From the sequence record MW749006.1: a DNA stretch of 64,000 bases; one strand, 5' to 3'. Position numbers and translations under genes: made by a program. Of this stretch, positions 1 through 36,705 are shown in pieces. Within the stretch, counting starts at the first letter, position 1. Each line of letters opens with the position of its first letter. The notes beneath the pieces are model-generated. The model made no database searches. It had not been told where the DNA came from and saw nothing but the letters and a program-made list of their open reading frames with translations.

Positions 1-1432
1 TAGTAACCCCTTCCTTCAGGAAGGGGGGGGGGGGAGGAATTGGAGTAGATAGATAATACTCTATCTACTCGGTTAACTTACATATTACCTAGCAACGAGT
101 TCCTAACTAAGTATCTATTGTAGCGCCTAGCGTTCTTCTCCTTCTTACAAGTACGTAGTCTATCTACTAGTAACCAAGGTGAATGAGCTATGAGTTGTAA
201 GTCTGTTAGTTTAGCATACTTAGTCAAACGTCTAGCAGTGTGATTAGAATGTAAACTAACTCTATCTACTCCATTGTTACCACCTATTAGACATTTACCG
301 TGCTTAACATGCTCTACTAGAGTACCTCTCTGAATACCTAGAGACATAGTGCCACCATACCTATTTCTAGTACCTCCTTTCTTGAATTTAAGTCGGTGTA
401 GCTGTCTCCTAGTATGAGTAAGTGGTTTGAGTTCTAGTACGTGAATCATGTCAGGTTTCGGTTGGTTACCCAAAACCTCGTTAGCTAACACCCAGGAATC
501 TACGCAGTGAGAATCAAACAACTTAGAAGCTTTGTTCGTAGTCTTAAACAAACCTAAACGTCTTCTGAAGGATGCTGTTTGACTTCCTTTGAAAGTGTTA
601 AGAGTAAAACCCAGCTCAGTTATTCTACCGTATAACCAATTCTTACCAGCTTGAATAGCTGAGAATCTTAGATTACGTCTACTACCACCTTTCTCAGTAG
701 CGACGTTGACATCCTCTACAACCACGTCTGTAACTGGATATAACCTAGCAAACCACTTCAGAATGTTAAGTTTAAGTTGCCACCTAGCTTTAGTAGAGGG
801 TGGAACCCACCCTTTACTTCTGGAACGATTCATTTTGTTAGCTCGGTACGGTGTCTTACGATATCGTCTAGCTCTCCTAGAGTTACTTCTGGCCTCCATA
901 ATCTTCTTTATGTGCTTAGCATTAGCAGCTAGTGAGTTGACGTTTAAGAAAGTACGAGTAGCTGACTTAACCGTGTATCCTTCAAAGCTACTTCCTGGAT
1001 CTATACCAACCGCAACGGATTGAACATCACCATCACTTCTATCCGTTAGTTTGATGTAAAACAAACCTTTAAGGTGTCTAGGTATAGCTTTACCTTTGGA
1101 CATTAGTTTCCTAGCTCTCTTGGGAGAGCAAGGCATCAAGGGTTTACCTGTGGAAGACACCACAGGAACCCATCTTTGTTTTGCAGAGTCACTGGAGTTC
1201 AACATGTGAACACCTCCATAAATTAGTCCCTTACGGGATCTTGATAACAAGTTAGGGTCTCTTCGCCACTTTCTACCATAGAGGTCCGAACTAGAGAAGT
1301 ATTCGAGACGTATTCCTGTGACTACCACGTCGCTGTAGCTAAGTTACAAACCGGCTAGTACAACTGTTTAGTCTCGCTGGAGTAGTTTGGCTACTCTTCA
1401 CAAGCCCCTTCCTTCAGGGAGGGGTAGTTGAC
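1..1432 (-). mobile_element. Non-autonomous IS200/IS605-superfamily (OMEGA) element carrying isrB and its omegaRNA; distal end truncated by or lying at the window edge
   Basis: Near-identical subterminal hairpins ccccttccttcaggaagggg (7-26) and ccccttccttcagggagggg (1405-1424), 19/20 identical, bracket the omegaRNA and isrB. No TnpA ORF lies between them. Confidence 0.8.
78..1205 (-). CDS. isrB: IsrB RNA-guided RuvC nickase (IscB family lacking HNH), 375 aa
   Basis: PLMP motif (GKPLMPC), RuvC-I GIDPG, Arg-rich bridge helix RSNSRRARRYRK, RuvC-II VVVEDV, RuvC-III SHCVDSW; no HNH. ATG at 1205 with SD GGAGG upstream; the longer ORF-track start runs into the omegaRNA. Confidence 0.85.
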   Translation of the reverse strand: MLNSSDSAKQRWVPVVSSTGKPLMPCSPKRARKLMSKGKAIPRHLKGLFYIKLTDRSDGDVQSVAVGIDPGSSFEGYTVKSATRTFLNVNSLAANAKHIKKIMEARSNSRRARRYRKTPYRANKMNRSRSKGWVPPSTKARWQLKLNILKWFARLYPVTDVVVEDVNVATEKGGSRRNLRFSAIQAGKNWLYGRITELGFTLNTFKGSQTASFRRRLGLFKTTNKASKLFDSHCVDSWVLANEVLGNQPKPDMIHVLELKPLTHTRRQLHRLKFKKGGTRNRYGGTMSLGIQRGTLVEHVKHGKCLIGGNNGVDRVSLHSNHTARRLTKYAKLTDLQLIAHSPWLLVDRLRTCKKEKNARRYNRYLVRNSLLGNM

Positions 1433-1452
1433 TGATTTAACCTTTCTGTGGT
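1215..1452 (-). ncRNA. omegaRNA (HEARO-like): scaffold ~1432-1215 plus 5' guide ~1452-1433
   Basis: The minus strand begins GTCAACTACCCC-hairpin-GGGGCTTG. It then shows a gagtag/ctactc stem, AGACTAA, CTAC..GTAG, CGAA-TACTTCTCTAG-TTCG, CTCTA, TGGCGAAGAGAC and a tccc-GTAA-ggga hairpin, the typical order upstream of iscB/isrB. Confidence 0.75.
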
Positions 1453-2105
1453 TGTATGTGCATTGAGATTAGATAAGTCTTTAGTGTCTTAGTAGACTCT
1501 ACTCCAGTTGAATACGTGGATAGTGACTTAAGATCTACTGTGCCGTATCTACCCATCATAGCGTTGTAAGCATTGAACCCACCTTTATCACCACCGCGAA
1601 ACTGAGTGAGTTCAGTGATAGTCTTATCTAGTCCCATACCCATTAGTACTTGTAGTTCAGGATAAGAGATCTTAGCGCCCTTAGAAGCTCCTGTGGGTTG
1701 GAAGGTGAGTTCATCTATAGTCTTGTTGTCATCTGGTAATGAAATCTTTTTATAGAGAGTCTGAGACTGTCTACGAAACGGTAGGTCAATCACTAAGTAC
1801 TTGTTAGGAGTCATGTGATCTGGTTTATCTGGATCGTTCTCTATCTTAAGACGTTCGAAGAATTCTACACCATACTTCTTAGCTATCTTTAGATTGTTCT
1901 CTACAGTTACACCATTGGCCTTGTACATAGGTTTGAAAAATACAATTGACTGGGTACCTTCTTGTATTTTTTTCATCCAGTTATCGAAATCTTTATCTGA
2001 CATCTGTTTAAAGATAGTGTTGTACTGTTCTACGTTATATCCAGTTGGTTCTATATCTTTAAGAAATTCAAGTATGAAGGCTTCAGCTTTCTTTCTGTTT
2101 GACAT
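1437..2105 (-). CDS. Virion RNA polymerase beta subunit, C-terminal part (phiKZ gp149-like)
   Basis: ASKGAKISYPELQVLMGMG resembles the RpoB C-terminal GGQRFGEMEVWAL motif. Start MSNRKK at 2105; jumbo-phage context. Confidence 0.7.
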   Translation of the reverse strand: MSNRKKAEAFILEFLKDIEPTGYNVEQYNTIFKQMSDKDFDNWMKKIQEGTQSIVFFKPMYKANGVTVENNLKIAKKYGVEFFERLKIENDPDKPDHMTPNKYLVIDLPFRRQSQTLYKKISLPDDNKTIDELTFQPTGASKGAKISYPELQVLMGMGLDKTITELTQFRGGDKGGFNAYNAMMGRYGTVDLKSLSTYSTGVESTKTLKTYLISMHIQPQKG

Positions 2106-2226
2106 GAGGGGAATCCTTCTATAGGGAAATGTAGTCAAAACATAGCTTGGGGTGTAGGAATTGAATTTCAATACAGTGACTGGTTTTTGGACCTAAGTAG
2201 GTTTATTTCTGAGTGAGGAGCAAGAC

Positions 2227-4074
2227 ATGCGAATTAAAACACATAGACAAGGTGGACATGAGTCAGGTGGATTGTCTCTAGGTGGCGGTAAGATGGCTGG
2301 TCCATTGACACTGTTTAGAGATCCCATTGAAGAACTAGAAGCCGTGACAAAACAATATGTAGATACATTAGGTACTCGTTTAGACGCAAGTTCTATCAAG
2401 ACTGGTATTCTACCTGATCGTTTGTTAGGTGGATGGCAGGGTGATGTTACTACTGACGTAGGTAGTCGAGTTACTACAGTTGGTGGTGTTGTTACTCCAG
2501 GTGAGTATACAAGTGTGGAAGTAAGTGATACAGGTCGCGTGGTTGATGGTGGTTTGATAACCGCTAACGATGTACCTGGTTTAGATTGGACTAAGTTTAC
2601 TAAAGATATGCCAAGTGACTTAGCCGGGTACGGTATCACTGACGGTATTAGTACTCGCGGTGATACATTAGAAGGTTACTTGATCCTGGAAGATCATCCT
2701 TCTATAGACAATGAGATCTCTAGTAAACAACACACCGATAGTTTGTTTCCTATTGAAGATAAAGATCGCGTTAAAGTTGGTGATGTTATTCGTAAGACTA
2801 CGGATGTTACTCCTCCAGGTTTCTTAAAGTGTAATGGTTCTATTGTAGATAAAACTATGTACGCTAATTTATACGCTTCTGTTGGTAATAAGTTTAATAA
2901 TAACATATCTAAAGGAAACGGAACTCCATGGTTCCAACAGTATGAAATAAATTCGGAACCCACTACCCCGACTTTTAATTGGACTGTAGGTTCTTCTATG
3001 CCAGTTTCTGGAGGGGGTGCAAGATCTAATATTCTAGTTACTAAAAATAGAGTTTATATCTTAGGTAATACTGCTAGTTCAGCGATATTGTCTGCTCCTA
3101 TATTACCAAACGGCGATGTAGGAACATGGACGGTAGTTGGGGATATAAATTATATTAACCCCATCACTAGTAAAAAACAAACCATGTGGTATTCAAGTGG
3201 AGTTGTAGTTTATAATAATGTTGTTTACCTTATAGGTGGTGGGGGGTTTAACTTTGCTTGTTTTAAAGCCACTATAAACCCCGATGGCACTATTGGATCT
3301 TTCACACTTTTACCCAATCCTTTAATTGAGGTAAATCGAAACTTTAGTCACTTTGTTTTAGGTAATAAAATTTATGTGGTTGGTGGTTACAAAGATACGT
3401 TACCTGGTTTAGATTCTTTGCCAGGTGGTCATGTATATAACACTTATTCTTGTTATATAAACACGGACGGAAGTTTAACTCCATGGACATTAGAACCTCA
3501 CTTAGTATGTCCTCCTGAAAATTCTCCAGAACGAGGTATAGCTGTAGTTACTAAAAATAGAGTTTATATGGTAGGATTAGAATCTCTAAACTCTAAAAAC
3601 GTGTTAATGTCTGAAATAAAAGAAGATTTATCTTTAACTCCTTGGGTAATTTTAAAAGATTATTTACCACAAAAAATAGTTGAGTGTAGAGGTGTGGTTA
3701 CAAATAAATCAGTTTATTTATTTGGTGGCGCTAATCATACAACATCACCTTCCGTATTATCTAACGATATAAATAAAGCCACTATTAATTTAGATGGAAC
3801 TTTATCTAAATTTGAAACTATTGGACAAGTTCCAAGTTTACCCTTCACCGATTCAAGATCAATAATTGTAAATAATAAATTACATCTATTCGGTATGAAG
3901 GATTCGGAAGATTTAAACTACATTACTATGAGTACTCCATTTCCGGGAGGAAGTAATGACTACTCTGAGTATTATAACGGTAGTCATTTAAATTTAGTTT
4001 ATTCTAATAAATTTACTTTACCTAATTTAAATTTCCAAACTAACAACCAATATAACTACTACATCAAGTACTAA
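2227..4074 (+). CDS. Tail fibre protein with collar-domain motifs and six Kelch-like repeats
   Basis: N-terminal EAVTKQYVD motif shared with the ORF at 63364. Collar motif TPPGFLKCNGS...YANLYASVG; repeats VTKNRVYILG, VYNNVVYLIGG, VLGNKIYVVGG, VTKNRVYMVG, VTNKSVYLFGG, IVNNKLHLFG; terminal FTLPNL. Confidence 0.75.
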   Translation: MRIKTHRQGGHESGGLSLGGGKMAGPLTLFRDPIEELEAVTKQYVDTLGTRLDASSIKTGILPDRLLGGWQGDVTTDVGSRVTTVGGVVTPGEYTSVEVSDTGRVVDGGLITANDVPGLDWTKFTKDMPSDLAGYGITDGISTRGDTLEGYLILEDHPSIDNEISSKQHTDSLFPIEDKDRVKVGDVIRKTTDVTPPGFLKCNGSIVDKTMYANLYASVGNKFNNNISKGNGTPWFQQYEINSEPTTPTFNWTVGSSMPVSGGGARSNILVTKNRVYILGNTASSAILSAPILPNGDVGTWTVVGDINYINPITSKKQTMWYSSGVVVYNNVVYLIGGGGFNFACFKATINPDGTIGSFTLLPNPLIEVNRNFSHFVLGNKIYVVGGYKDTLPGLDSLPGGHVYNTYSCYINTDGSLTPWTLEPHLVCPPENSPERGIAVVTKNRVYMVGLESLNSKNVLMSEIKEDLSLTPWVILKDYLPQKIVECRGVVTNKSVYLFGGANHTTSPSVLSNDINKATINLDGTLSKFETIGQVPSLPFTDSRSIIVNNKLHLFGMKDSEDLNYITMSTPFPGGSNDYSEYYNGSHLNLVYSNKFTLPNLNFQTNNQYNYYIKY

Positions 4075-4087
4075 CAAACACTAACTA

Positions 4088-4121
4088 ACCACCAAGGGAG
4101 CCTCTCGGTTCCCTTGGTGGT
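4088..4121. terminator. Bidirectional hairpin between convergent genes
   Basis: accaccaagggagcc-tctc-ggttcccttggtggt, 15-bp stem. Confidence 0.65.
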
Positions 4122-4142
4122 ATTCTATTATACTCAACACCA

Positions 4143-4457
4143 CTAAAAGAAGTATTCTTCGTTCTCTTTCAAGAATGGTAATATAACTAACTTAACATCA
4201 TCTAACCAACCTTCTGATCCATTAGCTATATTCAAAGCCATACGAATCTGTTTAGGTACTGCACTCTCTTTAGTGGAGTTCATAAACAAACCATGAAACA
4301 ACATAGTTAAGTAAGTGCGCTGTACATTCATAGCTTTATCATAAGCCATAGCAAAGTTACCGTTACCGGTTACCTTCTGAATACTCTCTTCTTTAAAACC
4401 CATTCGTCGCATTTCTTCTACAACAATACTACATAGATTAATATCCACATCGACCAC
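4143..4457 (-). CDS. Hypothetical protein
   Basis: 104-aa ORF filling the gap between a terminator and the next gene; start uncertain. Confidence 0.6.
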   Translation of the reverse strand: MVDVDINLCSIVVEEMRRMGFKEESIQKVTGNGNFAMAYDKAMNVQRTYLTMLFHGLFMNSTKESAVPKQIRMALNIANGSEGWLDDVKLVILPFLKENEEYFF

Positions 4458-4519
4458 CCATTTCTAAATTAATTATATCCGATATACTTTAGACCAGACA
4501 CACAGTAGGACTTCACCGT

Positions 4520-4930
4520 ATGTTCAAAATAATTAAAAAACTCTTTACTAAGAAAGAGTCTCCAGATAAACCTAAAGAAGTTCCTGTAGAGACGCACAAC
4601 TATGATCTCATTAATATCATAACAAACATAATACACAGTGATGACTTTGAACACATCTACTTTAAACCAGTGAGTAAGATCTATCTCATTACTGTATATA
4701 GTATGTCACTCTCAGATCTCTTAGATAACATAACTAATAAGAACTTCAACAGAAGTATCTCAGCTGTTAGTCTACATAACTATCTAGAAGACTCTCACCA
4801 TGACCTACAGCGACAGTTCTTTCGTATCTTGAAGATACTACCCAGTTACAAACTATCACCTCTCATAGAACATGACCTTATAGAGTTCTGTGATGCGTAT
4901 TCTTATTTGAAAGAACTTGGAGTGAAGTAA
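4520..4930 (+). CDS. Hypothetical protein
   Basis: 136-aa ORF, stop overlaps the next start (TAATG). Confidence 0.7.
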   Translation: MFKIIKKLFTKKESPDKPKEVPVETHNYDLINIITNIIHSDDFEHIYFKPVSKIYLITVYSMSLSDLLDNITNKNFNRSISAVSLHNYLEDSHHDLQRQFFRILKILPSYKLSPLIEHDLIEFCDAYSYLKELGVK

Positions 4931-5751
4931 TGGAATCCAAACTTAAACCTTATTCTCTTGGTATAGTAGTTGAACATAAACCAAGAGGTAGTTCAACCGT
5001 ACTAGTTTCACCTGTAGAGACACTTAACCTACAAGGTGAAGGAAGTATGAGAGAAGCTTCTAAGTCCTTTAAAGGAGCTATCCCGGACTCTACTAACTCT
5101 TCCTTTAAGACAGAACAAACATCTACTAACTACATACGTGCTAAATGGTTACCTTTAGGTACGTCTAATAGAACAACACCACCTGACGTTAGAGCCGGTG
5201 AGACTATTCTTATCTATAAGTTTGCTAACGTAGAAGAGTATTTCTGGGAAGACGCTATGACCGAACCTGAGTTACGTCGTTTAGAGGATGTTCTCTATTC
5301 GTATTCTAACTTAGCTGGTGGTGGTGCTCCCCATGACTTAGAGTCTAGTTACTGGGTACGTGTTAATACTAAAGATAAGTACATACACTTACACACCACT
5401 ACCTCAGATGGTGAACCTTTTGAGTATGATATCAAGATAGACACTGCTTTAGGTAACATCAAGATTAATGATAGTGTTGGGAATGATATTAAATTAGATT
5501 CTCCTACCAATACAGTAGAGATAAACACTCAACACGAATGTAATATTACAACAGCAACTAACATCAACTTAACAACTGGTAGCACTGTTAAGATTGTAGC
5601 TGGTTCATTAGCACAGGTGGTAGCTCCTAACATAACGTTAGATGGTGATACTACAGTAACTAAGTCCTTAACAATACAAGGACCAACTAAAGCTATGAAA
5701 GTAATAGACGTTAATGATGTTGTGTTAGCTAGAAACTTTGTACAGAAATAA
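4930..5751 (+). CDS. Baseplate central spike protein (phiKZ gp164-like)
   Basis: N-terminal OB-fold-like segment (SLGIVVEHK...AKWLP...TPPDVRAGETILIY) followed by short beta-helix-like repeats (IKIDT..GNIKIND..GNDIKLDS). Confidence 0.6.
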   Translation: MESKLKPYSLGIVVEHKPRGSSTVLVSPVETLNLQGEGSMREASKSFKGAIPDSTNSSFKTEQTSTNYIRAKWLPLGTSNRTTPPDVRAGETILIYKFANVEEYFWEDAMTEPELRRLEDVLYSYSNLAGGGAPHDLESSYWVRVNTKDKYIHLHTTTSDGEPFEYDIKIDTALGNIKINDSVGNDIKLDSPTNTVEINTQHECNITTATNINLTTGSTVKIVAGSLAQVVAPNITLDGDTTVTKSLTIQGPTKAMKVIDVNDVVLARNFVQK

Positions 5752-5772
5752 ACAACTTGGAGATACCGATAC

Positions 5773-7230
5773 ATGAAACTTCTTTTTCAGAAAAAACCAG
5801 AGTTTACCGAAGTAGATCCGTATAAAATGTTGATAAACATAGGTTGCCTAATGGATATACCAGTAGGTTCTTATGTTCGTGGTCAGAAAGGTGAGAACTT
5901 AATGAATGGTGGTTTCTCTAACCTAGTAGCTATTGCTGGTAAGGGTAACACGTTCAAGAGTACTATTGCGCATTACATGTTCTTATCTGCTGCTAGTAAA
6001 ATGGCTGCTTCTGGTTTGATGCCTTACCTGAACACCTATGATACTGAAATGAACATTAGTTTAGATCGTCTTAATCGCTTTGCTCAGATCTTTCCTGAGT
6101 TTGAAGGTTTTGATCTACATAAGGAAGGAGTTTGGTCAGTTACAGATAAGACTCTTCACTTAGGTAATGAATGGTTTAAGATTCTTAAAGATTTCTTACG
6201 TGAAACTAAAGTAAAGAACAAGAAGAGTTATACCTTCGAAACACCGTTTGTTGACAAAGACGGTAAACCTATTCATATGTTGTTCCCTACCTTTGGTGAA
6301 GTAGATAGTATCTCAGAGTTTGAGACTGCTGACATTGAAGAGATGCAGAATAAGAATGAGATTGGTACCTCAGGTGGTAACACTATCCATATGCGAGCTG
6401 GTCTTGCTAAGACTCGTCTGTTAATGGAACTACCGGGACTGTGTAACACCACAGGACACTACATGATCATGACTGCTCACGTAGGTAAAGAAGGTCCTGA
6501 CATGAACGCTAGTCCTATGAGTCGACCCACTAAGACTCTACAACACATGAAGTCAGGTGAAGCTATTAAAGGTGTTACTGGTAAGTTCTTTTTCTTACCC
6601 ACCGCTGTGTGGCAAACTGCTTCTTCTACTCTTCTTAATAACCAAGGAACTAAAGGTCCTGAGTATCCTCGTTTACGTGATGATCCAGATCCGAACTCTT
6701 CAGATCTTAACATCGTAACCATTCGTATGTTACGTAGTAAGTTTGGTCCCTCTGGTGTTAACCTTAAAGTGATTGTTTCTCAGACTGAAGGTGTTCTTCC
6801 TTCTTTAACTGAATTCCATTTCCTTAAAGAAGATTGTGGTCGTTATGGTATCGAAGGTTCTTTACAGAACTACAACATGGTTCTATATCCAGACGTTAAG
6901 TTACAACGTACAACCGTTCGTAATTTAATTGACACTGATCCATTATTACGTCGTGCTATTAAGATTACTGCTGACTTAGCACAGATTGCTACGTTCTATA
7001 AAACTCTACCGTTTGCTATTCCACCGATTGAAGACCTTTACAAGAAACTTGAAGAAGAATACGGTTGGGGTATCTTACTACAAACAAGAGACTTCTGGAC
7101 TTTCAATCACTACGACCACCCAGTACCATATTTAAGCAGTCTGGATCTACTTGAGATGTACTATGGAACCTACATCCCATACTGGTGGGATCCTAAGACC
7201 AAGACTGTTAAATCACCTAAGAAGAAATAA
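5773..7230 (+). CDS. uvsX: UvsX/RecA-like recombinase ATPase (phiKZ gp152-like)
   Basis: Variant Walker A GKGNTFKST, YDTE motif, Walker-B-like EVDSISE, and a RecA-like MIMTAHV strand. Confidence 0.65.
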   Translation: MKLLFQKKPEFTEVDPYKMLINIGCLMDIPVGSYVRGQKGENLMNGGFSNLVAIAGKGNTFKSTIAHYMFLSAASKMAASGLMPYLNTYDTEMNISLDRLNRFAQIFPEFEGFDLHKEGVWSVTDKTLHLGNEWFKILKDFLRETKVKNKKSYTFETPFVDKDGKPIHMLFPTFGEVDSISEFETADIEEMQNKNEIGTSGGNTIHMRAGLAKTRLLMELPGLCNTTGHYMIMTAHVGKEGPDMNASPMSRPTKTLQHMKSGEAIKGVTGKFFFLPTAVWQTASSTLLNNQGTKGPEYPRLRDDPDPNSSDLNIVTIRMLRSKFGPSGVNLKVIVSQTEGVLPSLTEFHFLKEDCGRYGIEGSLQNYNMVLYPDVKLQRTTVRNLIDTDPLLRRAIKITADLAQIATFYKTLPFAIPPIEDLYKKLEEEYGWGILLQTRDFWTFNHYDHPVPYLSSLDLLEMYYGTYIPYWWDPKTKTVKSPKKK

Positions 7231-35208: not shown

Positions 35209-35245
35209 GAACCACCGGGGGATTACCTCCGGTGGTTCTTCCTTT
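35209..35245 (+). terminator. Intrinsic terminator
   Basis: gaaccaccggggg-atta-cctccggtggttc plus ttccttt. Confidence 0.65.
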
Positions 35246-35289
35246 ATTATGTAGTCCAAGAATTCTGTGATTAAAATAAGGAGCTTATC

Positions 35290-36705
35290 ATGGCTAAGTT
35301 GTTATACGATAAAGAACCACGTGAGGAAATCATTCCTTCACTCACTCGAAACGGTGTTACTATTTCCGAAGAAGAGATGTGTCAATTAGACGATGACTTC
35401 GTTAGTCTTGAGAATTACACTGAATCTTACATCAGTGTCTCCACTGTCTATGAACATTTAGTTGACAAACCAATTAACTTTCTAGATTCAGGTAACTTTG
35501 TACTTTACAACGAATACATTAAGAACATCACTAAGAACTTAGACACAAAGTCTCCTGTGTTGTTTATCTCTCAAGAAGCAATAGATCATATGCCTTCTGT
35601 TGTACTTAACCGTAAGCTTGCTCTAGAAGGCTTTGTAGCTGACATGTGGGCTAAGATCAAAGAACTCTTCAAACGCATCTATGAAGCTGTTAAGAAGTTC
35701 TTTGCGGACATCTTTACTCGTATGGGTAGAATGAAGAAGAAGCTTAAGAACCTAGAGAAAGTTTTGGGTAGCACTAACAAAGACATTAAGACTATTCACT
35801 TAGATAAGATACCTGGTGGTTTAGCTAGTTCTTATCCGGTAAGTGGTTCTGTTAATTACAATGCTGTAATGGAAGTCTTTGCTAACACAACTTTAGGAAC
35901 TACTGCTTTAGTTAAGATTAACGCTGAAGCTAAGAAGTTAGCTGGTGAAGATATACTAGATTCTAGTTTTGTTGCAGATATTAAAGCTTTGAAATCTAAG
36001 TCTGCTGCATTAAAACAAGAAACAGGTAATCAACCTACAGACACAACTAAACCTTCAGAAGGAGGTTCGTTAACTGATGCTTCTAAGTCTATAGATGCTC
36101 CTGTTAATAAAGCTGAGAGTGATGCTATAGAGATAGGTAGTAAAGTTGAGAACGAAGGTATTACTAATAGTGATAGTGATACTGAAGGTGAGAACAAAGC
36201 ACTCGCTAGCTTTAAATTGTTCTCTAAGAATGTAGCTGATACCTTAGAACCATTGAAAGGTAAGAAGTTAATCAAAGGTAAGATTATATCTGAGATTGAA
36301 GTAGATGCTGAAAGTTCTCTTAAGTTCGTTATAACTACTGAGAAAGATAAACCAGATGGTATTAACTTAGGTGATAAAACTGAGTTAATTAAATTGATCT
36401 CTGCTAGTAATAAGATCTTTGAAGGGATGGAATCTGTTGCTAAAACTTTTAGTGAAGTTAATGACTCTATCTTTAAGAACTTAGACGCAGTAGATAAGAT
36501 CACTAAAGACATTGACGCTATTCAAATAGAGTCTTTAGGTAAGTATCGTGCTGTTCTTCAGAAGAAGATCAAGACTCGTCTTAACTTGATGAAGAACTTC
36601 TTTAAAGGTTACAATGAAGTTAATAAGAATATGTTCAGTATGACTATTGACGCTATTGATGGTAACATTAATTACACTGTGTTATCACTTAAGTATTTCG
36701 GTTAG
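35290..36705 (+). CDS. Inner-head protein paralog
   Basis: ALEGFVADMWAKIKELFKRI motif like the neighbouring paralogs. Confidence 0.65.
   Translation: MAKLLYDKEPREEIIPSLTRNGVTISEEEMCQLDDDFVSLENYTESYISVSTVYEHLVDKPINFLDSGNFVLYNEYIKNITKNLDTKSPVLFISQEAIDHMPSVVLNRKLALEGFVADMWAKIKELFKRIYEAVKKFFADIFTRMGRMKKKLKNLEKVLGSTNKDIKTIHLDKIPGGLASSYPVSGSVNYNAVMEVFANTTLGTTALVKINAEAKKLAGEDILDSSFVADIKALKSKSAALKQETGNQPTDTTKPSEGGSLTDASKSIDAPVNKAESDAIEIGSKVENEGITNSDSDTEGENKALASFKLFSKNVADTLEPLKGKKLIKGKIISEIEVDAESSLKFVITTEKDKPDGINLGDKTELIKLISASNKIFEGMESVAKTFSEVNDSIFKNLDAVDKITKDIDAIQIESLGKYRAVLQKKIKTRLNLMKNFFKGYNEVNKNMFSMTIDAIDGNINYTVLSLKYFG

Follow-up and report, generated by a model that had tools for sequence, protein, structure and literature searches.

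The 64,000 nt of sequence record MW749006.1 analyzed here, referred to throughout as the window, open with a locus that raises the question of whether an RNA-guided nickase of the IsrB/omegaRNA (OMEGA) kind resides in a nucleus-forming jumbo phage and, if so, what it would do there. A sequence-only reading of the window had proposed an intact element of this kind, with a guide drawn from the 3′ end of a virion RNA polymerase (RNAP) gene. Judged by its sequence, the locus is a genuine OMEGA element with IsrB and omegaRNA; it is of the IS200/IS605 kind, non-autonomous, and appears functional and recently mobile. The best explanation of the results below is a non-autonomous ISC/IS200-IS605-type OMEGA element in a lineage of nucleus-forming jumbo phages, acting by RNA-guided homing or restoration, a reading to which we assign a probability of roughly 65%.

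Positions 1–6000 of the window are 100% identical to positions 1–6000 of Bacillus phage vB_BspM_AgentSmith (MW749006.1; 200,233 bp; deposited as linear). Because AgentSmith encodes a chimallin-type nuclear shell protein (phrog_4795 match, 3.3e-66), a PhuZ tubulin (phrog_4733 match, 1.7e-61), and many annotated split RNAP β/β′ genes, it is, going by gene content, a nucleus-forming jumbo phage of the Chimalliviridae type. Nucleotide searches of the phage collection for both close and remote matches returned only AgentSmith itself and no close deposited relative; the nearest deposited phages share only ∼44% protein identity with it in the virion RNAP β-subunit C-region (β-C) gene that adjoins the element. 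A search with the virion RNAP β-C protein, however, found metagenomic relatives at 97, 90, and 87% identity, and comparison with the closest of these (contig L011, 97%) set both ends of the element. In L011 and in contigs L012–L015 the site is empty, the virion RNAP β-C gene being followed within 3–6 nt by a homologue of the downstream gene, AGENTSMITH_215, with no element between. The L011 empty allele reads ...ACAACCGCAGAAAGGTTAAATGA up to the junction and ATGTCTGAAACA... beyond it, and the occupied AgentSmith allele reads ...ACAACCACAGAAAGGTTAAATCA, then 1,445 nt of element, then ATGTCTGAAACA....

Thus defined, the element lies on the minus strand, with 1,432 of its 1,445 nt inside the window (positions 1–1432) and its final 13 nt (TGGAGTAATATTG) outside it, at record positions 200221–200233, across the circular junction. 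Because the last 13 nt of the element are the last 13 nt of the record, the deposited AgentSmith sequence is a circular permutation opened within the element. Synteny backs this junction: in RAY and Goslar, the homologues of AGENTSMITH_215 (gp156 and gp198, respectively) are found just downstream of the gp149-type gene. The span of 1–1452 given by the sequence-only reading therefore needs correction, the true end lying beyond position 1, and the anatomy it described stands. Similarity among full copies (the second AgentSmith copy and the metagenomic copies described below) begins sharply at GTCAACTACCCC (GTCAAC), which is position 1 of the HEARO RNA model, and extends through isrB and both 3′ hairpins to ...ATGGAGTAATATTG (the GGAGTAA tail); the flanks upstream of GTCAAC are unrelated among all copies. 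The G+C content of the element is 42% versus 37% for the genome. A group I intron or IStron was considered and rejected, as an Rfam scan of window positions 1–3000 (E ≤ 1) found no intron family and the element sits between genes rather than inside one.

Subterminal hairpins mark both ends of the element, without inverted repeats and without a target-site duplication in any of three empty/occupied pairs. On the 5′ side, the SL1-like first omegaRNA stem-loop (CCCCTCCCTGAAGGAAGGGG, positions 1405–1424, minus strand) is repeated at the 3′ end as a terminal hairpin (CCCCTTCCTGAAGGAAGGGG, positions 7–26, minus strand) that is preceded by a run of C; the two are in direct orientation and identical at 19 of 20 positions, so that the matching end hairpins described from the sequence proved to be direct repeats. 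A second small hairpin (GAGTAGCCAAACTACTC, positions 1380–1396, minus strand) has arms resembling those of a further 3′ hairpin with an 11-bp stem (GAGTAGATAGAG..CTATCTACTC, positions 43–70, minus strand; z = −5.7 for the 80-nt end region), which is identical in the second copy. Beyond the hairpins, the element tail GGAG-TAATATTG places a new Shine-Dalgarno sequence 8 nt before the downstream ATG. Just inside the 3′ hairpin, window positions 23–34 are 12 consecutive G on the plus strand (C on the element strand), compared with 4 in other copies; one solo remnant (the first, described below) has a similar run, and the 12-G run lies ∼20 nt from the point at which the record is opened. It could be a real expansion or an assembly or sequencing effect.

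Immediately inside the 5′ end lies the predicted omegaRNA scaffold (227 nt, positions 1206–1432, minus strand), the 3′ part of which contains the isrB Shine-Dalgarno sequence GGAGG at 1213–1217. Rfam HEARO (RF02033) matched positions 1251–1432 (minus strand) over the whole model (1–211) at E = 1.2e-7, with a score of 46.4 bits that is below the Rfam gathering score of 83. Eleven other isrB genes, from relatives with 88% to ∼42% protein identity, have the same full-length, sub-threshold match at the corresponding upstream position. As in HEARO RNAs, the full-length match lies immediately upstream of the nuclease open reading frame (ORF); in contrast to them, the AgentSmith scaffold lacks ∼45 model positions and one helix. 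The HEARO model was built mainly from HNH-containing IscB loci. An RNAalifold consensus of seven seq­uences had two-sided changes in 19 of 42 pairs, although these mostly contrast two clades and hence represent few independent events. Because the single-sequence fold of guide plus scaffold was no more stable than shuffles (z = −0.7), we take the evidence for structure from the covariance model and the alignment. Overall, the complete omegaRNA of the sequence-only reading is borne out by a full-model match, albeit one below the gathering score.

The sequence directly 5′ of HEARO model position 1 is the presumed guide (ACCACAGAAAGGTTAAATCA, positions 1433–1452, minus strand), its length of 20 nt being borrowed from the IsrB of Desulfovirgula thermocuniculi (DtIsrB; PMC9581776). 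The scaffold starts at 1432 and the TAA of the upstream gene occupies 1437–1439, leaving the 4 nt between them that had been noted at the outset; a 20-nt guide is therefore the 3′ end of the virion RNAP β-C gene, made up of its last 13 coding nt, its TAA, and the 4-nt spacer. This agrees with the earlier claim that the guide is the end of a conserved phage gene, homologues of which are found in 292 phage records. The guide region also holds AAAGG, the native Shine-Dalgarno sequence of the downstream gene. Neither this guide nor that of the second AgentSmith copy matches elsewhere in the AgentSmith genome. On the minus strand of positions 1–2400, a sigma-70 scan, which does not apply to polymerases encoded by the phage itself, detected neither promoter nor terminator, a result compatible with co-transcription of the omegaRNA with the RNAP gene.

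The scaffold is followed by isrB (positions 78–1205, minus strand), which encodes a 375-residue protein with a PLMP domain, a split RuvC, no HNH, and a C-terminal part predicted to interact with the target-adjacent motif (TAM). RRXRR was the sole Pfam match at E ≤ 0.01 (2.7e-39, residues 54–213 of a 416-aa extended ORF). In a PDB sequence search, the closest solved structure was DtIsrB (8DMB; 1e-42, residues 7–309), and IscB chains aligned only to the N-terminal ∼120–160 residues. In an alignment of AgentSmith IsrB with 20 homologues at 35–86% identity (21 sequences), the PLMP motif P22-L23-M24-P25 is conserved, with M24 and P25 present in all sequences, and the region aligns with the PLMP domain of DtIsrB. 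The RuvC residues D69 (GIDPG), E164 (VVVEDV), and H233 and D236 (SHCVDS) are invariant columns and align with 8DMB. Between RuvC II and III no HNH domain was matched in Pfam at E ≤ 0.01, and the protein has only 375 residues. Thus, the three RuvC motifs and the missing HNH that had been read from the translation hold up against homologues and domain models. The ratio of nonsynonymous to synonymous substitution rates (dN/dS) of isrB is 0.18–0.23 against the second copy and against contig L009, the copies being ∼13% apart in nucleotides; by this measure isrB is under purifying selection.

The element is one of several in AgentSmith and its relatives. A second full IsrB/omegaRNA copy, with AGENTSMITH_73 as its isrB, occupies record positions 71782–73217, outside the window, directly before the ATG of gene 74; it carries a different guide (TAGTAAGTAGAATAGCTAAT) and is 87% identical to the first copy in nucleotides and 86% in protein. 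Three solo remnants of ∼50 nt (record positions 101888–101933, 148750–148797, and 151093–151140) also lie just before start codons; what each retains is the first 8 nt of the 5′ end (GTCAACTA), a single hairpin, and the GGAG tail. This structure is exactly what recombination between the two direct-repeat hairpins of the element would produce, and the solos resemble deletions of that origin. In the first solo (record 101888) the tail mini-ORF reads ATG-GAG-TAC instead of ATG-GAG-TAA, and the annotation begins gene 100 there; the third (record 151093) provides the last six codons and the stop of gene 144.

Beyond AgentSmith, ∼30 metagenomic protein clusters are 81–88% identical to its IsrB, and related chimalliviruses have copies of at least 81% identity before various start codons. 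The copies that were fetched represent 9 independent sites and adjoin genes for chimallin, RNAP subunits, phiKZ internal head proteins, a B-family DNA polymerase, RuvC, and DUF7193; several of these sites are empty in AgentSmith, and the AgentSmith site is empty in relatives, so that presence and absence are polymorphic in the lineage. Contigs L016 and L042 carry the element at one common site, in the interval between chimallin and an RNAP β′-like gene, with flanks 94–96% identical. Contig L034, at first taken for a site with a degraded tail, proved to be a decayed copy that lies within a gene and has lost its 3′ hairpins; it was excluded from the TAM count. In IMG/VR, a scan with the RNAP-gene protein found nothing, and pattern scans for full and solo ends returned only a single, already known contig. 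TnpA was found neither in the element nor beside any fetched copy, and the element is therefore classed as non-autonomous, as are most ISC elements (PMC13565253). Likewise, no Y1_Tnp or serine recombinase (resolvase) was found among 85 annotated AgentSmith proteins of 100–290 aa, the size range scanned.

More distant IsrB homologues (33–53% identity) were seen in phage or phage-like contexts, namely L036 (a contig of GCA_974444005.1), L030 (LR745208.1, a 485-kb uncultured phage), and L029 (Microcystis phage Ma-LMM01), with a HEARO match among these at L036; IsrB in phages thus extends more widely than the AgentSmith clade. In contig L031, a second, more divergent scaffold-like 5′ end (GTCAACTACCCCTCGCTAACTAAAGGGGCTTGTGAAGAG) occurs at 5703–5750, 1.7 kb downstream of the first element, and the ORFs that follow it have no Pfam match.

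Three clean empty/occupied pairs were available for comparison of insertion sites: AgentSmith against the empty L011, and the occupied L033 and L041 against AgentSmith. The L033 copy lies between paralogues of internal head proteins, and its empty AgentSmith counterpart is at window positions 35245–35314 (plus strand; ...AAGGAGCTTATC and ATGGCTAAG on the two sides of the junction at 35290), at the start of gene 34. The L041 copy follows a RuvC resolvase gene, and its empty AgentSmith counterpart is at record position 68976. In L011 the empty allele matches 18 of the 20 guide nt and has ATGT directly after them. Empty alleles in relatives, the absence of which the sequence-only reading had counted against itself, therefore exist in L011 (97% amino acid identity) and in L012–L015. 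The insertion point is exactly 5′ of the downstream start codon and leaves the native AAAGG on the guide side. More generally, each of the 9 independent full sites and each of the 3 solos is followed by ATG, and the fourth base is A at 8 of them, T at 3, and G at 1. This ATG(A/T/G) resembles the NTGA TAM of DtIsrB and is a candidate TAM. A stop codon 1–4 nt upstream was considered as part of the target and dropped once more copies had been compared, and insertion into a generic phage intergenic hairpin was ruled out by empty sites without a hairpin.

The two guide mismatches of L011, the nearest empty allele, are at −17 and at −2, beside the candidate TAM. In each of the three close empty/occupied pairs the alleles differ, over the 15 nt nearest the junction, only at position −2 of the left flank, the second guide nucleotide from the candidate TAM (C/G at window position 1434, C/T at window position 35288, and A/G at record position 68974). 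This recurrent difference may mark empty alleles that escape the guide, or it may be chance; with three pairs, in non-coding spacers, and roughly p = 0.02 by a conservative estimate, it is only suggestive.

We compared the element with the known systems that it most resembles. With the DtIsrB–omegaRNA complex (8DMB; match 1e-42) it shares PLMP, a split RuvC with bridge helix, a TAM-interacting domain, and no HNH, all in the same order, as well as an upstream omegaRNA, a 5′ guide outside the transposon end, and an isrB Shine-Dalgarno sequence in the last hairpin. DtIsrB uses the TAM NTGA and a 20-nt guide and nicks 8–11 nt upstream of the TAM (PMC9581776); the motif beside the target in the phage family, ATGA/ATGT, is similar. 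SL1 of DtIsrB is dispensable for nicking and has been suggested to have a role in transposition (PMC9581776), and its counterpart in the AgentSmith element is the hairpin that is repeated at the other end. The systems differ in that the AgentSmith scaffold has 227 nt rather than 262, its IsrB has a C terminus ∼20 aa longer, its 3′ tail bears a Shine-Dalgarno sequence for the neighboring gene, and its host is not a bacterium but a virulent, predicted nucleus-forming phage.

Subterminal hairpins, no inverted repeats, and no target-site duplication are also features of IS200/IS605 (ISC1-type) elements and of the "restorative homing" described for TnpB and IscB, as are insertion beside a short fixed motif, which doubles as TAM in those elements and would do so in AgentSmith, and a flank-derived guide that sees only the empty site (PMC13565253). 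In contrast to these, the AgentSmith family has no TnpA among the 85 proteins scanned, inserts exactly 5′ of start codons, and has solo-hairpin derivatives, and the probable repair partner of a phage element is a co-infecting genome. Homing of the latter kind has been termed "non-restorative homing" and treated mainly as theory (PMC13565253). A third relevant case is PhiPA3 gp210, an intron-encoded endonuclease that nicks the PhiKZ virion RNAP gene (PMC12908238). Like it, AgentSmith IsrB would be a nicking nuclease of a chimallivirus mobile element with a virion RNAP gene of relatives as its target and nuclear access as the decisive factor; the two differ in that gp210 recognizes DNA by protein and belongs to an intragenic self-splicing intron, whereas AgentSmith IsrB would be RNA-guided and its element is intergenic. 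IscB, IsrB, and TnpB go unmentioned in the two recent reviews of jumbo and nucleus-forming phages that were searched, and we found no report of IsrB/omegaRNA elements in nucleus-forming jumbo phages in the full-text literature. The kind of element is already known, and what is noteworthy is the start-codon insertion, the portable Shine-Dalgarno sequence, the solo derivatives, and the host lineage.

Taken together, these features suggest how RNA-guided homing or restoration would proceed. The omegaRNA would be transcribed from upstream, so that its 5′ ∼20 nt would be the end of the RNAP gene, and then processed. IsrB–omegaRNA would recognize a guide match only with ATG(A/T/G) directly after it, and because that arrangement exists only without the element, only the empty site would be recognized. 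There the ribonucleoprotein (RNP) would nick the non-target strand, and in phage DNA undergoing replication the nick would be mended by recombination, with an element-bearing genome as the source, with the result that the element would be either restored after excision or copied into the empty allele of a co-infecting relative (homing). Given a lytic phage with a co-infecting genome as its natural repair partner, homing between phages would be expected. Movement to new sites would require a Y1 transposase in trans with CAT on the opposite strand as its target, and the TAM would be this same transposase target, read as ATG on the guide strand. Following insertion, the GGAG-N8 tail would substitute for the Shine-Dalgarno sequence that has been cut off from the downstream ATG, so that the operon would still work.

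Several results weigh against homing or restoration as the explanation. The HEARO score falls short of the gathering score, as noted above. The phage nucleus reportedly keeps out DNA-targeting enzymes, even the intron endonuclease of a related phage (PMC12908238), and the RNP may never reach replicating phage DNA. The ATG beside every copy could equally reflect selection for harmless insertions at gene starts rather than a TAM. The L011 empty allele may resist the AgentSmith guide, given the mismatch at −2. Finally, because no Y1 transposase or serine recombinase was found among the 85 AgentSmith proteins scanned, the spread to new sites is left unexplained. An extension of the homing explanation would address nuclear access by positing an IsrB–omegaRNA lineage adapted to nucleus-forming phages, in which the RNP is imported into the chimallin nucleus or acts before or at its formation, inter-phage homing is RNA-guided with start codons as TAM, a replacement ribosome-binding site is carried along, and the −2 mismatches are the trace of an arms race. 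We regard this extension as tentative and rather doubtful.

Of the other explanations, the one that survives best is transposition alone, with TnpA supplied by the host or by another element, IsrB a passenger or a factor in restorative repair, the match between guide and RNAP gene accidental, and no homing from phage to phage. The variety of sites at which related phages carry the element, the 13% divergence of the two AgentSmith copies, and the IS200/IS605-typical ends with no target-site duplication and a constant adjacent 3-nt motif are all as this explanation would have it. However, TnpA was not detected in the 85 AgentSmith proteins scanned or beside any fetched copy; the common site of L016 and L042, with its 94–96% identical flanks, fits inheritance as well as homing and so is not decisive. 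Transposition alone is conceivable, and we consider it unlikely.

Alternatively, the element could be a weapon rather than, or besides, a parasite, such that nicking of the virion RNAP gene at its 3′ end would cut the yield of an element-free co-infecting relative and the phage would benefit from its element. The conservation of the target gene in 292 chimallivirus records, the precedent of an intron endonuclease acting on a virion RNAP gene (PMC12908238), and purifying selection on isrB are consistent with this, and the −2 difference in all three close pairs is the pattern that escape from targeting would be expected to leave. However, the family is found in front of a variety of unrelated genes (those for DNA polymerase, internal head proteins, and RuvC as well as hypothetical ones), so that the RNAP target is not special, and the damage done by a single nick is mild. 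Interference with competitors is the less supported role, given the variety of gene starts at which the family is directed, and we judge it improbable. An immobile, domesticated intergenic cassette, in which hairpins and portable Shine-Dalgarno sequence shape the stability or translation of the downstream mRNA and IsrB is inactive on DNA, is very improbable: three solos do keep just the hairpin and GGAG tail before start codons, and the sigma-70 scan found no minus-strand terminator within the element, but the catalytic residues are intact, dN/dS is ∼0.2, the fact that near-identical relatives differ in whether they carry the element speaks for recent mobility, and relatives manage without the element at the same junction.

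Chimalliviruses are known to shield their DNA from Cas9, restriction enzymes, and the endonucleases of rival phages. A recently mobile, multi-copy RNA-guided nickase in such a phage implies either that the RNP reaches phage DNA or that the DNA is exposed for a time, and either outcome is informative on protein or RNA import. If the RNP is imported, a programmable nickase would be a natural editing tool for phages that are hard to engineer, and if the adapted homing lineage is real, its IsrB would be the first natural RNA-guided DNA nuclease known to act on chimallivirus genomes. The occupied allele, natural empty alleles, guide, candidate TAM, and possible escape variants together form a ready test system for "non-restorative" OMEGA homing. 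Insertion at start codons with a portable Shine-Dalgarno sequence would also be a way for a transposon to inhabit a gene-dense virus without polar damage.

The left neighbor of the element and donor of its guide is AGENTSMITH_2 (positions 1437–2105, minus strand), a virion RNAP β-C gene of the phiKZ gp149 type. Its product matches phrog_3233, "RNA polymerase beta subunit" (3e-75), and its orthologues are RSL2 ORF048 and RP31 ORF051. Table 1 of PMC5468394 lists RSL2 ORF48 in the virion-RNAP β C-region column, the same column as phiKZ ORF149, and according to the text of that paper RP31 ORF51 is a β subunit of the virion RNAP and was detected in the virion; the identity that the sequence-only reading had given to the upstream gene is thereby corroborated. 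A PDB sequence search with the protein returned only spurious matches to repeat proteins. Because its AlphaFold2 model is poor (pLDDT 49), the identification rests on orthology and published annotation. On the other side, the annotated start of AGENTSMITH_215 is a TTG inside the element tail (record 200221–200223); the ATG one codon downstream is the likelier start, as it matches the 266-aa homologues on the empty-site contigs.

Elsewhere in the window, a UvsX-type recombinase is encoded at positions 5773–7230, which we count in favor of the homing or restoration explanation. The AgentSmith record also contains an I-HmuI/NUMOD-type endonuclease (gene 120) between fragments annotated as "lytic transglycosylase" (genes 119 and 121; record 126145–128226) and a GIY-YIG nuclease (gene 132; record 139159–139989) just upstream of two RNAP β genes; both nucleases are possible intron or free-standing homing endonucleases. 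Finally, AGENTSMITH_137 (record 146262–147050) matches Pfam Acb3, a CBASS inhibitor (1.2e-10).

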